From assembly GCA_002269645.1 (NCBI GenBank), contig NIVC01001092.1, positions 124,001 through 188,000 on the forward strand: a DNA stretch of 64,000 bases, in the 5' to 3' direction. This document shows, piece after piece, positions 6,484 through 11,865 of this stretch (its first letter is position 1; each line of letters begins with the position of its first letter). Source of the DNA: Macrostomum lignano (Eukaryota). Below the pieces are notes generated by a model. That model was not told where the DNA came from. It saw only the letters and a program-made list of their open reading frames with translations, and made no database searches. The position numbers and the translations under genes were made by a program.

Positions 6484-9400
6484 TTGGCAAAACTTCATTG
6501 ATAACAAGGTTTATGTATGACAGCTTTGATAGCACTTATCAGGTGAGCTTAATAAAATTATAGATCTATTGATTAAGTTATTTTGTAACCCATAATTCTG
6601 ATAGGGCAAAGTGTTTGGTAAATTATTTTCAGGCCACCATTGGTATAGATTTTCTATCCAAGACTATGTACCTGGAAGATCGTACAGTAAGCCTTGTTCA
6701 CTTGTTTTCAATGTTTAATTTTTCATTTGTTAAAATCATTAAAATTACAATTCTAAAAATTTTTTAGATTCGGCTGCAACTTTGGGACACAGCTGGTCAG
6801 GAGCGATTTCGCAGTTTAATCCCGAGCTACATACGCGATTCCTCTGTTGCTGTGGTTGTGTATGACATCACCAGTGAGTTGTTTACTATTGTGTATGGCT
6901 TTGTTTGCTGTGCTGATCTATTTTGATGATTGTCTTAAACTAATGCTAATTTCATTTCCCTACAGACGCCAACTCGTTCCAGCAGACTAGCAAGTGGATT
7001 GACGACGTGCGAACCGAGCGCGGTGGTGACGTCATTATTATGCTAGTTGGCAACAAGACCGACCTGGCCGATAAGAGGTTTAATTTTATGTGTGACAGAG
7101 GGGACTGTGTCAAGTGACAGGGGAGGACAGTATGCAGTGATAGGGGAGGGACAGTATGCAGTGACAGGGGAGGACAGTATGCAGTGACAAGGGAGGGACA
7201 GTATGCAGTGACAGGGGAGGACAGTATGCAGTGACAGGGGAGGGACAGTATGCAGTGACAGGGGAGGACAGTGTGCAGTGACAGGGGAGGGACAGTATGC
7301 AGTGACAGGGGAGGACAGTATGCAGTGACAGGGGAGGGACAGTATGCAGTGACAGGGGAGGACAGTGTGCAGTGACAGGGGAGGGACAGTATGCAGTGAC
7401 AGGGGAGGACAGTATGCAGTGATAGGGGAGGGACAGTATGCAGTGATAGGGGAGGGACAGTATGCAGTGATAGGGGAGGGACAGTATGCAGTGACAAGGG
7501 AGGGACAGTATGCAGTGATAGGGGAGGGACAGTATGCAGTGACAGGGGAGGACAGTATGCAGTGATAGGGGAGGGACAGTATGCAGTGATAGGGGAGGGA
7601 CAGTATGCAGTGATAGGGGAGGACAGTATGCAGTGATAGGGGAGGACAGTATGCAGTGACAGGGAAGGGACAGTATGCAGTGATAGGGGAGGGACAGTAT
7701 GCAGTGATAGGGGAGGGACAGTATGCAGTGACAGGGAAGGGACAGTATGCAGTGATAGGAGAGGGACAGTATGCAGTGATAGGGGAGGGACAGTATGCAG
7801 TGATAGGGGAGGGACAGTATGCAGTGATAGGGGAGGGACAGTATGCAGTGATAGGGGAGGGACAGTATGCAGTGACAAGGGAGGGACAGTATGCAGTGAT
7901 AGGGGAGGGACAGTATGCAGTGACAGGGGAGGACAGTATGCAGTGATAGGGGAGGGACAGTATGCAGTGATAGGGGAGGGACAGTATGCAGTGATAGGGG
8001 AGGACAGTATGCAGTGATAGGGGAGGACAGTATGCAGTGACAGGGAAGGGACAGTATGCAGTGATAGGGGAGGGACAGTATGCAGTGATAGGGGAGGGAC
8101 AGTATGCAGTGACAAGGGAGGGACAGTATGCAGTGATAGGGGACAGGTTAGCCAAGAACATCACTGCCACAGTTTGCAACTGCAGGCAAGTATCAACTGA
8201 AGAAGGCGAGCGCAAGTCCAAGGAGCTGAATGTGATGTTCATTGAAACCAGTGCCAAGGCTGGCTACAATGTTAAACAGGTGAGACTGGCATAGGCTAGC
8301 AATGCATTTTGTTCCGGTCGCGCATGCCCAACCGATCGCTGATCACCTTGTAATCTGCCCGCAGCTATTCCGTCGCATAGCCGCTGAACTGCTCAGCAAA
8401 GAGAAACCGCCAGCAAAGCAGGACAACGACTGTATCCTTTTGTTATTATTATTAACTTCTTGCCTCAGTAATGTTATTATTTACATACTGATTATTTTCA
8501 TATGGAGTATAATTATCAATTACCATCAATTACCCCAGCTCCCAAATGGCTTTTACAGCTGGGTGAACTGAAGCAACGCAGAGTTAAGTGTCTTGCTCAA
8601 GGACAAATTGTTCTGAGTGGTTCGAGTTCGAGAATCGAACCACCGACCTTTCAGTCGTGAGTCCGACGCTCTAACCACTGGGATACAACCCCATATAGAG
8701 TATATAGTTATCTGACAATTGCATTACAGCTTTTCATATGGCGTACTAACAGTTTGTATATTACTTTTCCGTAATATATTAACGCCCATTTCAGTTGCTC
8801 TATAGTCTAAATTTACTGCTAAAATACCAATGGCTTATCTGACTTTTGAACCTCTGCAAATATTATCGTACTAACCTTAGGTATGCATGCTTACTTCAAA
8901 TGTGTCACACCGTGTGTGTCCACAGTCAGTCAGAGTGCCAGATGTGTCACATCGGGTGTCCACAATCAGTCAGAGTGCCAGATGTGTCACACTGGGTGTC
9001 CACAATCAGTCGGAGTGCCAGATGTGTCACATCGGGTGTCCACAATCAGTCAGAGTGCCAGATGTGTCACACCGGGTGTCCACAGTCAGTCAGAGTGCCA
9101 GATGTGTCACACTGGGTGTCCACAGTCAGTCAGAGTGCCAGATGTGTCACACTGGGTGTCCACAGTCAGAGTGCCAGATGTGTCACACCGGGTGTCCACA
9201 ATCAGTCAGAGTGCCAGATGTGTCACACCGGGTGTCCACAATCAGTCAGAGTGCCAGATGTGTCACACCGGGTGTCCACAATCAGTCAGAGTGCTAGATG
9301 TGTCACACCGGGTGTCCACAATCAGTCAGAGTGCTAGATGTGTCACACCGGGTGTCCACAATCAGTCAGAGTGCCAGATGTGTCACACCGGGTGTCCACA

Positions 9401-10514
9401 GTCAGAGTGCCGATGTGTCACACTAGGTGTCCACAATCAGAGTGCCAGATGTGTCACACCGGGTGTCCACAATCAGTCAGAGTGCTAGATGTGTCACACC
9501 GGGTGTCCACAATCAGTCAGAGTGCCAGATGTGTCACACCGGGTGTCCACAATCAGTCAGAGTGCTAGATGTGTCACACCGGGTGTCCACAATCAGTCAG
9601 AGTGCCAGATGTGTCACACCGGGTGTCCACAGTCAGAGTGCCGATGTGTCACACTAGGTGTCCACAATCAGAGTGCCAGATGTGTCACACCGGGTGTCCA
9701 CAATCAGTCAGAGTGCCAGATGTGTCACACCGGGTGTCCACAGTCAGAGTGCAGATGTGTCACACTAGGTGTCCACAATCAGAGTGCCAGATGTGTCACA
9801 CTAGGTGTCCACAATCAGAGTGCCAGATGTGTCACACTAGGTGTCCACAATCAGAGTGCCAGATGTGTCACACTAGGTGTCCACAATCAGAGTGCCAGAT
9901 GTGTCACACTAGGTGTCCACAATCAGAGTGCCAGATGTGTCACACCAGGTGTCCACAATCAGAGGGCCAGATGTGTCACACTAGGTGTCCACAATCAGAA
10001 TGCCAGATGTGTCACACTAGGTGTCCACAATCAGAGTGCCAGATGTGTCACACTAGGTGTCCACAATCAGAGTGCCAGATGTGTCACACTAGGTGTCCAC
10101 AATCAGAGTGCCAGATGTGTCACACCAGGTGTCCACAATCAGAGTGCCAGATGTGTCACACCAGGTGTCCACAATCAGAGTGCCAGATGTGTCACACTAG
10201 GTGTCCACAATCAGAGTGCCAGATGTGTCACACTAGGTGTCCACAATCAGAGTGCCAGATGTGTCACACTAGGTGTCCACAATCAGAGTGCCAGATGTGA
10301 CGCACTGTGTGCTCTCGTTTTAGCCCGTGGTGCAGCTTTATTATTTATTCTCGCATGAGCCAAGGCAAGGGCGTAAAGGCCAGATTTTGCTTATCGCTTC
10401 CTTAACCAATAAATTACCGGCATGCCCGGCTTACGCGTCTGCTCAGTGATCGAGGTGAAGCTCAAGGACACTCCGCAAGATCCCGAGAACCAGTCGCGAG
10501 GCTGCTGGTGCTGA
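6484..10514 (+). CDS. RAB6: Rab6 small GTPase, isoform A (exon 1 not found in window). Exons 6484-6542, 6633-6686, 6768-6873, 6966-7077, 8186-8279, 8365-8431, 10447-10514
   Basis: Spliced translation [63 protein letters not shown].../[22 protein letters not shown]...[19 protein letters not shown].../[22 protein letters not shown]. All phases consistent, CxC terminus, AATAAA at 10784. Confidence 0.95.
7092..8146. repeat. 23-24-bp minisatellite (GGACAGTATGCAGTGAYAGGGGAG)n in Rab6 intron
   Basis: Direct tandem array filling intron 7078-8185. Confidence 0.95.
8500..8692 (-). mobile_element. tRNA-derived CORE-like SINE family 2, copy A
   Basis: Minus strand GGGGTTGTATCCCAGTGGTTAGAGCG...GGTTCGATTC head, then TCCTTGAGCAAGACACTTAACTC...CAGTTCACCCAGCTGTAAAA resembling the MIR/CORE domain. 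Second copy at ~30090-30395. Confidence 0.8.
8900..10298. repeat. 40/36-bp minisatellite (GATGTGTCACACCGGGTGTCCACAATCAGTCAGAGTGCCA)n inside the U12 intron
   Basis: Tandem array, 40-mers at the 5' side and 36-mers at the 3' side. Confidence 0.95.
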
Positions 10515-10949
10515 GTTGTGTCTTTTTTGGTTAACTCAACTGACTTTGAGCAATATATGGATAATTTCTCGGACCTTTTCTGATGTTTTTTTATCATATC
10601 CGGTTTCCTAACTGAAGCTCCTCTGATCCCTGTTCAGTCTCTGTGATCAACAGGCTTGACCCTTGACCTTGTTTTAGTCTTGTTTTGTTTCGTGTTTCTT
10701 TCTCTGTCCAATAATTTTCACTATCTTGCTTGTCTATTGTAACAAACACAGGTAACATTCCAGCCGTATAGTTGTGCTTGACTAATAAATTTTCTTGATC
10801 TAACTCTTTTTCTATCTGAAATAATAGACAGGGTTTTAGTGTCCAACAGATGCCTTAGCAAGGCCTTGGCAATCAAAGTGTTGGCAAGTCACTTTTACGC
10901 CTGTTTAGGGCTTATAAACCCTTTGTAATTTTGCAGGCCTTTAAACTCT

Positions 10950-11243
10950 TTTGTACTTTAGCGGGCCATTAAACCCCAACTTTGTACTTTAGCGGGCCAT
11001 TAAACCCCAACTTTGTACTTTAGCGGGCTATTAAACCCCAACTTTGTACTTTAGCGGGCCATTAAACCCCAACTTTGTACTTTAGCGGGCCATTAAACCC
11101 CAATTTTGTACTTTAGCAGGTCATTAAACCCAACTTTGTACTTTAGCGGGCTATTAAACCCCACTTTGTACTTTAGCGCTCCATTAAGCCCATCTTTGTA
11201 TTTTTGTGGGTCAGTATACTCGACTGGTTTGTACTTTAGCGGG
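10950..11243. repeat. 31-bp tandem repeat (TTTGTACTTTAGCGGGCCATTAAACCCCAAC)n between Rab6 terminal exons A and B
   Basis: About 8-9 direct copies. Confidence 0.9.
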
Positions 11244-11643
11244 CCAGCATGAGAGAATAAGAGAATTTCACATTAAAATAGCTTAAAAATCATTCCTTGT
11301 TTGCCAATTTCCCTTCCTAATCGCTCTGCTAAAAGCCTTAATACGCTTTGACACCTCTGTTTTGTATGCGATATTCTTTTATACTATTTGTACTATATAA
11401 TAACATATAATAACCATATTCTATTCGCATATAAATTCCCGTTGTGCCTTTATCAATATTAACGGCAATTAGCTCTACTTATTACTGGTCAGTAGGAGTA
11501 GTTTAAAATAACTTTGGTACTTTTTAATAGGTATGCAACATTAAATGTTTTCAAGTTTAATTATTGCACCCCGGATCTACTTTATCGATTTTATATCGGA
11601 CTCCTTCACTCTCAATTCTGCCAATTGATTTCTGAAACGCCAG

Positions 11644-11711
11644 ACATCGAACTTCGGCCAGTCGATCCGGACGACTCTAGCGAGCAGGCCAAAGGTTACT
11701 GCAACTGTTGA
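11644..11711 (+). CDS. RAB6: Alternative terminal exon B of Rab6 (YIELRPVDPDDSSEQAKGYCNC*)
   Basis: CCAG acceptor at 11640-11643, phase 1 matches donor at 8431, same 68-nt coding length as exon A, ends in CxC, U12-like branch CTCCTTCAC at 11601-11609, ATTAAA at 11791. Confidence 0.75.
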
Positions 11712-11865
11712 ATTATTTTTTTGTTGCTAGCTGGCAACTGTGTTCCAGTTAATGACGGTTGGCTTGAAAAAAGATTAATTTGTTTATTATATTAAATTTT
11801 GTATTAGCTAATTCTCTTTTGTTTATGGTTGTTAGCTAGCATCTCTGCCATTGCGTGGGTAGATT

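Follow-up and report, generated by a model that had tools for sequence, protein, structure and literature searches.

Does a single donor of the minor (U12-type) spliceosome lead the last intron of a Rab6 gene to two different terminal exons, and thus to two different protein tails? The question is raised by a stretch of 64,000 nucleotides (nt) of the flatworm Macrostomum lignano (assembly GCA_002269645.1, contig NIVC01001092.1, positions 124,001 to 188,000 of the forward strand), hereafter the window, which is the whole stretch of DNA that was analysed. An earlier note, made from the letters of the sequence, had described in it a Rab6 gene with one U12-type donor and two terminal exons ending in CxC, and had predicted a minor-spliceosome isoform switch. 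Having followed up this note, we consider it likely that the last intron of M. lignano Rab6 is of the U12 type and has two alternative terminal exons that give the protein two different tails.

One donor and two terminal exons

The gene is indeed a Rab6, as the earlier note had named it. The protein encoded in the window matches the Pfam Ras family (5.5e-56), its isoform A is 100% identical to M. lignano PAA52036.1 (P0044), and its identity to mollusc Rab6 is 84-85%. Over the donor and the two terminal exons, the record of contig NIVC01001092 (L011) matches the window without a difference, which together with the identity of isoform A assigns the window to M. lignano. The features of its 3′ part are the following:

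8365-8431, plus strand: Rab6 exon 7, the penultimate coding exon, 22 residues and the T that opens the split codon
8432-8440, plus strand: U12-type 5′ splice site GTATCCTTT, the single donor common to both terminal exons
10398-10406, plus strand: U12 branch-site motif TTCCTTAAC upstream of exon A, with its branch A at 10405, a perfect match to TCCTTRAC
10447-10514, plus strand: coding part of terminal exon A, a 22-residue tail with the split-codon L, ending CWC, TGA at 10512-10514
10784-10789, plus strand: AATAAA, 270 nt 3′ of the stop of exon A, candidate poly(A) signal by hexamer match only
11601-11609, plus strand: U12 branch-site-like motif CTCCTTCAC upstream of exon B, with its branch A at 11608 and a C in place of R
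11644-11711, plus strand: coding part of terminal exon B, (Y)IELRPVDPDDSSEQAKGYCNC, TGA at 11709-11711
11791-11796, plus strand: ATTAAA, 80 nt 3′ of the stop of exon B, candidate poly(A) signal by hexamer match only

The intron opens with GTATCCTTTT at 8432, directly after exon 7. The translation places the last base of this exon (T, 8431) at codon position 1 and the last intron in phase 1. Both acceptors, the AG at 10445-10446 for exon A and the AG at 11642-11643 for exon B, are the first AG 3′ of their branch motif. Joined to the split-codon T, exon B reads YIELRPVDPDDSSEQAKGYCNC up to its stop and ends in CNC. Each tail has 22 residues and ends in the Rab prenylation motif CxC, from which prenylation is predicted. 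Retention of the intron, as judged by translation, would add about 50 unrelated residues and lose this motif. The donor, branch motifs, acceptors, tail peptides, phase and CxC ends reported by the earlier note are thus all found in the sequence and its translation, and the two poly(A) hexamers are present as well. Its figure of 68 coding nt per exon holds for the span to the end of the stop, of which 65 nt are coding and the last three are TGA. Altogether, this architecture fits alternative last exons, with one donor in common and an acceptor, a stop and a candidate poly(A) signal for each exon.

The U12-type signals are few in the window and well placed. RTATCCTTT matches twice on both strands (128 kb) for 1.4 matches expected, and one of the two lies exactly on the exon boundary. 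The sequence TTCCTTAAC occurs once on both strands of the 64 kb, at the branch site of exon A. Finally, TCCTTVAC has three matches for 6.3 expected, two of them 35-41 nt upstream of the two acceptors. A chance origin of the donor and branch motifs is excluded, because they are rare in the window and sit at the exon boundary and just upstream of the acceptors. Furthermore, GTATCC is a poor site for U1 and a perfect one for U11/U6atac, and neither acceptor (...ggcttacgcgtctgctcag and ...gatttctgaaacgccag) has a T-rich tract, while other acceptors of the gene read ttattttag, ttattttcag and aattttttag. Indeed, the remaining five introns of the gene within the window have donors GTGAGY, GTAAGC or GTTTAA and T-rich acceptors, and only the last one has a U12-type donor. 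One further candidate was rejected: ATATCCTTT, a consensus donor of AT-AC-type U12 introns, occurs at 3692-3700 on the plus strand, at no recognisable exon boundary and in a count within chance expectation.

At this locus, the minor spliceosome would join the single donor to exon A through the proximal branch site or to exon B through the distal one. Use of exon A would be accompanied by cleavage at the poly(A) site of exon A, and isoform B would need both transcription past that site and skipping of exon A. The outcome would be two Rab6 proteins with one GTPase core and different tails, each predicted to be prenylated. Hypervariable tails contribute to the membrane targeting of Rab proteins and, by analogy, the two Rab6 tails probably differ in membrane targeting or in partner binding. 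Isoform A is probably the major product at the window locus, since its branch site is perfect and that of exon B is weaker. Since both junctions use the same U12 donor, the minor spliceosome acts as a gate for the two isoforms together and does not switch between them. Loss of the minor spliceosome should therefore hit both isoforms, and "minor-spliceosome isoform switch" is a misnomer.

The tail exons in other animals

We scanned the sequence downstream of each Rab6 donor for CCTT[AGC]AN followed within 8-62 nt by an AG, and then by a phase-1 frame with CxC or CC at its end. Only two terminal exons, with nested variants that use a later AG, are returned in the window, in the M. lignano paralog L002, in Hyalella azteca (L004) and in Mytilus edulis (L007). 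The other paralog sequence, L001, adds one unrelated match 9 kb downstream; the sponge-type contigs L005 and L006 give exon A and a second CxC exon, and trout gives one exon. The 9-mer donor GTATCCTTT follows the same codon in L001, L002, L009 (Opisthorchis viverrini), L004 and L007, and donors of the form GTATCCT(T/C) are found in L001, L002, L004, L005, L007, L009 and L010. In the M. lignano paralog, Opisthorchis, Mytilus and Hyalella the order is conserved: U12 donor, then a proximal A-type exon ("xIEVKL") and a distal B-type exon ("xIELRP"). The terminal exons outside Macrostomum are the following:

Hyalella azteca L004, exon A: donor A followed by GTATCCTTT; MTEVVLRD...CAC behind TTCCTTAAC, 15 nt from the acceptor
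Hyalella azteca L004, exon B: TVDLRPNPP...CIC behind TTCCTTAAG, 13 nt; equals annotated P0122
Mytilus edulis L007, exon A: donor A followed by GTATCCTTT; MTEVRLKDTP...CAC behind TTCCTTAAC, 12 nt
Mytilus edulis L007, exon B: NIELRPKEV...CSC, 8 kb further on, behind TTCCTTAAC, 11 nt; equals RefSeq isoform X2, P0119
Opisthorchis viverrini L009, exon A: donor T followed by GTATCCTTT; LIEIKLSD...CFC behind TTCCTTGAC, 59 nt
Opisthorchis viverrini L009, exon B: (Y)IELKPIEPP...CGC, no clear branch motif; equals the tail of P0256

In Opisthorchis, the terminal exons occur twice in tandem, as A-B-A-B (22927, 23383, 23738 and 24199), with a period of about 811-816 bp, for which either a tandem duplication or a misassembly could account.

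These data bear on the idea that exon B arose as an open frame by chance, or belongs to another transcript, and has no part in Rab6. In its favour there is a single point, the lack of a direct transcript for exon B at the window locus. Yet B-type tails sit on Rab6 cores in Macrostomum (P0007), Opisthorchis (P0256), Mytilus and Hyalella, in RefSeq isoforms of Pecten, Argopecten and Babylonia, and in a 206-residue product on a 1,117-nt Logan contig, and a genomic B exon lies in the same place at four other loci. The comparative data effectively refute this idea, to which we give next to no credence.

In sponges, the layout is similar and the sequence of the second exon less so. The Rab6 of L005 and L006, two sponge-type contigs from metagenomes, is closest to sponge Rab6 (Halichondria 90%, Geodia 89%). 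Its donor, T followed by GTATCCTCC, precedes an A-type exon behind GGCCTTAAC (11 nt) and, 250 nt after that exon, a second CxC exon, SIVVPTTQEYHYGDRESQCGC, behind GTTCCTTAAC (15 nt); in L005, this whole arrangement lies at 10155-10970. The second tail is the annotated tail of Geodia barretti Rab-6A (P0260) and is also carried by P0259, a 209-residue product on a 1,015-nt JGI contig. Neither AATAAA nor ATTAAA was found after either terminal exon in L005. The second sponge exon, SI(I/V)VPT, and the bilaterian B exon, xIELRP, are equivalent in position and weakly similar. Halichondria L010 (6292-6430) has a U12-type intron of 69 nt and exon A only. The trout Rab6 paralog L008 also has exon A only, with the donor GTATCTTTT (one mismatch) and TTCCTTAAG at 16 nt.

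The U12-type signals that the earlier note had pointed out are therefore conserved at the orthologous intron in flatworms, mussel, amphipod, sponges and trout, the last with its one donor mismatch. On these comparisons, the U12 character of the last Rab6 intron is judged to be ancient, and the A/B exon pair to go back to the common ancestor of flatworms, molluscs and crustaceans or beyond it. This age does not agree with the duplicated terminal exon of the earlier note, if it is taken as a local event. A profile search for B-type tails brought up nothing but short fragments, most of them A-type, and did not yield the taxonomic spread of the B tails. Among short gene calls from metagenomes (P0185, P0207, P0213, P0214, P0219, P0235-P0237 and P0240), we also observed read-through of the donor, with products ending in ..EDCIL.. 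or ..EDSILF. These endings translate (T/A) followed by GTATCCT and are a protein-level signature of the Rab6 U12 donor in many taxa.

The Rab6 copies of M. lignano and the surroundings of the gene

A second Rab6 locus of M. lignano (Mlig019996g1, L001/L002) presents the two exons with their strengths exchanged. Its product P0007 (three GenBank accessions) carries tail B, YIELRPVEQTAASDQAKSYCNC, and is 95% identical to isoform B of the window. Its donor, T followed by GTATCCTTTT, is that of the window locus. Downstream come an intact A-type exon, LIEVKLKDSPQEVENEGTSSCLC and a stop, behind the one-mismatch branch motif TTCCTTAAA, and a B exon, YIELRPVEQTAASDQAKSYCNC and a stop, behind a perfect TTCCTTAAC. 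Branch-site strength is thus reciprocal, with A perfect and B mismatched in the window, A mismatched and B perfect in L001, and the annotated isoforms follow suit. Because of this match, the sequences suggest that the M. lignano copies have partly divided labour between tails A and B.

The two blocks are syntenic duplicates, since a Xaa-Pro aminopeptidase gene lies downstream of Rab6 in both; in the window, it is a long open reading frame (ORF) of the Peptidase_M24 type at 30752-32506. They can be aligned only in exons, and exon B, with 72% nucleotide identity to the paralog exon B, forms an island within otherwise unalignable sequence. The proportion of synonymous differences (pS) is saturated, at 0.80-0.92, and that of nonsynonymous differences (pN) is 0.024 for the core, 0.18 for tail A and 0.16 for tail B (tail B pS 0.80). 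As only exons align and synonymous sites are saturated, the duplication is judged to be old. The low pN of the tails against this saturated pS, within introns that are otherwise unalignable, argues that both tail exons and their branch motifs have been kept by selection in both copies. The cross-locus comparison (pN about 0.17 for the tails) consequently supports two intact terminal exons under purifying selection.

At the window locus, the donor-to-A junction is annotated (P0044, P0241-P0243), whereas annotation of the donor-to-B junction is limited to the paralog (P0007) and to other species (P0119, P0122). The GenBank gene models of the M. lignano assembly derive from a genome-guided RNA-seq transcriptome (PMC5730564), and the donor-to-A junction of the window is thus transcript-derived. 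Both tail types are accordingly present among RNA-seq-derived M. lignano proteins, A from the window locus and B from its paralog.

Several observations weigh against two U12-spliced tails at this locus. First, the exon B branch motif has one mismatch, a C where the consensus has a purine. Second, the branch A lies 41 nt from the 3′ splice site for exon A and 35 nt for exon B. U12 branch sites classically lie at 10-20 nt, and published screens allowed 8-30 or 8-38 nt (Sheth et al. 2006, PMC1557818); the exon A spacing is outside the 8-38 nt range and that of exon B just inside it, so that the two acceptors do not have the spacing used to define U12 introns. Third, the poly(A) sites of both terminal exons are hexamer matches and nothing else, and an Rfam scan of the 64-kb window found no RNA family, small nuclear RNAs included. 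Fourth, no identical protein was found in the databases with isoform B of the window as query, and the cluster of the window locus has tail A in all five M. lignano-type proteins (four named M. lignano and one Logan protein); its sixth member, a JGI protein, has a different, A-like tail. Finally, the near-identical copy L012 (about 99% identity) is too similar to give any power on recent constraint.

The missing isoform B could mean that the paralogs have divided the work completely, with the window locus making only A, exon B being an unused relic and L001/L002 supplying B. The GenBank and UniProt products of the window-type copies, which are all tail A (P0044, P0241-P0243), the only product of the paralog, which is tail B (P0007), and the reciprocal branch-site strength are what such a division would leave. 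However, exon B of the window is intact in frame and length and still has its CxC, stop, first-AG acceptor and branch motif. Its pN is only 0.16 despite saturated synonymous sites and unalignable flanks, and an unused exon should have decayed since the duplication. Moreover, the annotation was deposited as a reduced "coregenes" set of transcripts, from which alternative transcripts with an identical coding sequence were removed (PMC5730564), and the database proteins found amount to one product per M. lignano gene copy, so that a minor isoform could be missing from the databases. We therefore regard a relic exon B as unlikely and favour alternative use of both terminal exons at the window locus.

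As for the spacing, the distance from branch motif to acceptor is 32-59 nt at all five independent flatworm sites, against 11-16 nt in mussel, amphipod, sponges and trout. The flatworm spans are the following:

Window: 10398-10446 and 11601-11643
L001: 25863-25903 and 26322-26380
L009: 22857-22924

At all 14 sites examined, flatworm or not, the acceptor is the first AG after the branch motif. The joint chance of the five AG-free flatworm stretches is about 3e-7 at the local AG frequency, a rough figure, as some of the AG-free zones reach further upstream. A hairpin that would shorten the distance from branch site to AG was considered and dropped, as no consistent structure was found (Z-scores -0.06, -1.18, -2.74 and +0.24). 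By inspection, nothing consistent was found that would be a second branch motif nearer to each flatworm acceptor. We read the long spacing as a property of the flatworm lineage and not as evidence against U12 splicing, because the deviation is common to flatworm loci that keep the motifs.

An alternative is that the major (U2-type) spliceosome takes out the last intron, whose U12-like motifs would then be incidental. The 35-41 nt between branch motif and acceptor are more typical of U2 introns, and a more distant M. lignano paralog, L003 (P0118), has a plain U2-type intron at the same phase-1 position (9386-9481; GTGAGT, 94 nt, T-rich tract), so that U2 splicing is possible there after sequence conversion. 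L003 has only an A-type terminal exon and looks like a case of U12-to-U2 conversion along with loss of exon B. In the window, by contrast, the donor suits U11/U6atac and only poorly U1, and both acceptors lack the T-rich tracts of the other introns of the gene. In addition, the donor 9-mer has survived in paralogs whose synonymous sites are saturated and is retained in three other phyla, and the branch motifs are conserved inside otherwise unalignable introns. Removal by the major spliceosome is thus very improbable, and U12-type splicing remains our explanation for both exons.

A broader scenario, which we put forward tentatively and hold to be somewhat less likely than its opposite, is that the Rab6 tail choice is among the oldest conserved alternative-splicing events of animals. 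It would be wholly U12-dependent, present in the protostome ancestor and possibly before the split of sponges and bilaterians, and lost where Rab6 was duplicated (vertebrates, L003) or where the intron turned U2-type. To this, flatworms would have added a relaxed U12 spacing (32-59 nt) that keeps the first-AG rule. If true, the relaxed spacing would imply an altered recognition of the 3′ splice site by the flatworm minor spliceosome.

The upstream exons of the window locus are the following:

6484-6542, plus strand: Rab6 exon 2 (tblastn and manual model), entered in phase 1; acceptor ttattttag, donor GTGAGC
6633-6686, plus strand: Rab6 exon 3; U2-type donor GTAAGC
6768-6873, plus strand: Rab6 exon 4, ending VYDIT; U2-type donor GTGAGT
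6966-7077, plus strand: Rab6 exon 5 (NANSFQQ...TDLADKR); donor GTTTAA
8186-8279, plus strand: Rab6 exon 6, 31 residues; U2-type donor GTGAGA

A search for exon 1 within the 64-kb window found none. Upstream of exon 2, a retrotransposon integrase ORF (Integrase_H2C2, rve; 60% GC) covers positions 1-2127, and the element probably sits in Rab6 intron 1, since exon 1 is outside the window. The gene is also rich in minisatellites. A unit of 24 nt repeated 43 times (7113-8143) fills intron 5, after exon 5, and one of 36-40 nt repeated 37 times (8900-10286) lies within the U12 intron. Between exons A and B is a 31-nt unit in 9.6 copies (10950-11246), whose consensus has ATTAAA, intact in seven copies, and 3′ of exon B a 23-nt unit in 15 copies (11860-12197). 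Sequences resembling transfer RNA (tRNA), with box A/B-like motifs, are present at 8540-8690 on the minus strand, inside the U12 intron, and at about 4010-4070. ARAGORN calls no tRNA gene in the window, these sequences included, and they are probably fragments of short interspersed nuclear elements. Further downstream, a rhodopsin-family G-protein-coupled receptor ORF is found at 46555-48108.

Rab6 and other alternative terminal exons

The closest counterparts of the window locus are annotated Rab6 loci of other animals and of M. lignano itself (Mytilus edulis X2, Hyalella azteca, M. lignano Mlig019996g1 and Geodia barretti Rab-6A). They have in common a phase-1 GTATCCTTT donor after the LFRR... 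exon, an A-type then a B-type exon, U12 branch motifs and CxC ends. Outside flatworms, these loci, which are known as database gene models, differ by a branch motif 11-16 nt from the AG, against 35-41 nt in the window. In the literature, leaving aside supplementary intron catalogues, which were outside our scope, we found no account that gives Rab6 a U12 intron or alternative tails, nor one of U12 introns in Macrostomum. The Rab6 system thus appears to be an undescribed, phylum-spanning and purely U12-type alternative-exon system, although databases already list models of its isoforms for several species.

Rab6 controls Golgi and post-Golgi traffic. A conserved choice of tails would imply two functionally distinct Rab6 pools in many invertebrates, and the lack of the second exon in the vertebrate and fly models would explain why these pools have escaped notice. 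The trout paralog, which is the only vertebrate locus that we examined, has a single A-type terminal exon. RNA interference and transgenesis are usable in M. lignano (PMC5730564). Furthermore, the long branch-site spacing of flatworms could reveal how the minor spliceosome locates its 3′ splice site.

Within the same family, mammalian RAB6A and RAB6A′ arise from a mutually exclusive duplicated internal exon that changes three residues of the GTPase domain and leaves the tail identical, whereas here only the tail changes. In KRAS4A/4B and in the ubiquitous and brain isoforms of CDC42, alternative last coding exons swap lipid-modified hypervariable tails, and with them the membrane behaviour, on an unchanged GTPase core. 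As in the Rab6 described here, the choice of terminal exon leaves the core constant and alters the tail. However, the KRAS and CDC42 events are vertebrate ones with CaaX-type tails, while those of Rab6 end in CxC, the motif of double geranylgeranylation, use a U12 donor for both exons and are found in several animal phyla. To our knowledge, the tail introns of KRAS and CDC42 are of the ordinary U2 type.

U12-type splice sites are already known to take part in the choice of terminal exons or poly(A) sites, in SRSF10 (PMC7244321) and in RNPC3, which encodes U11/U12-65K (PMC5473595). There, a minor site is set against a major site or a U11-binding enhancer, and the outcome reports the abundance of the minor spliceosome. 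In Rab6, on the other hand, both outcomes use the U12 donor and U12-type acceptors. For splicing biology, Rab6 would thus offer a natural and deeply conserved case of one U12 donor choosing between two U12-type acceptors, unlike the cases in which a minor site competes with a major one.

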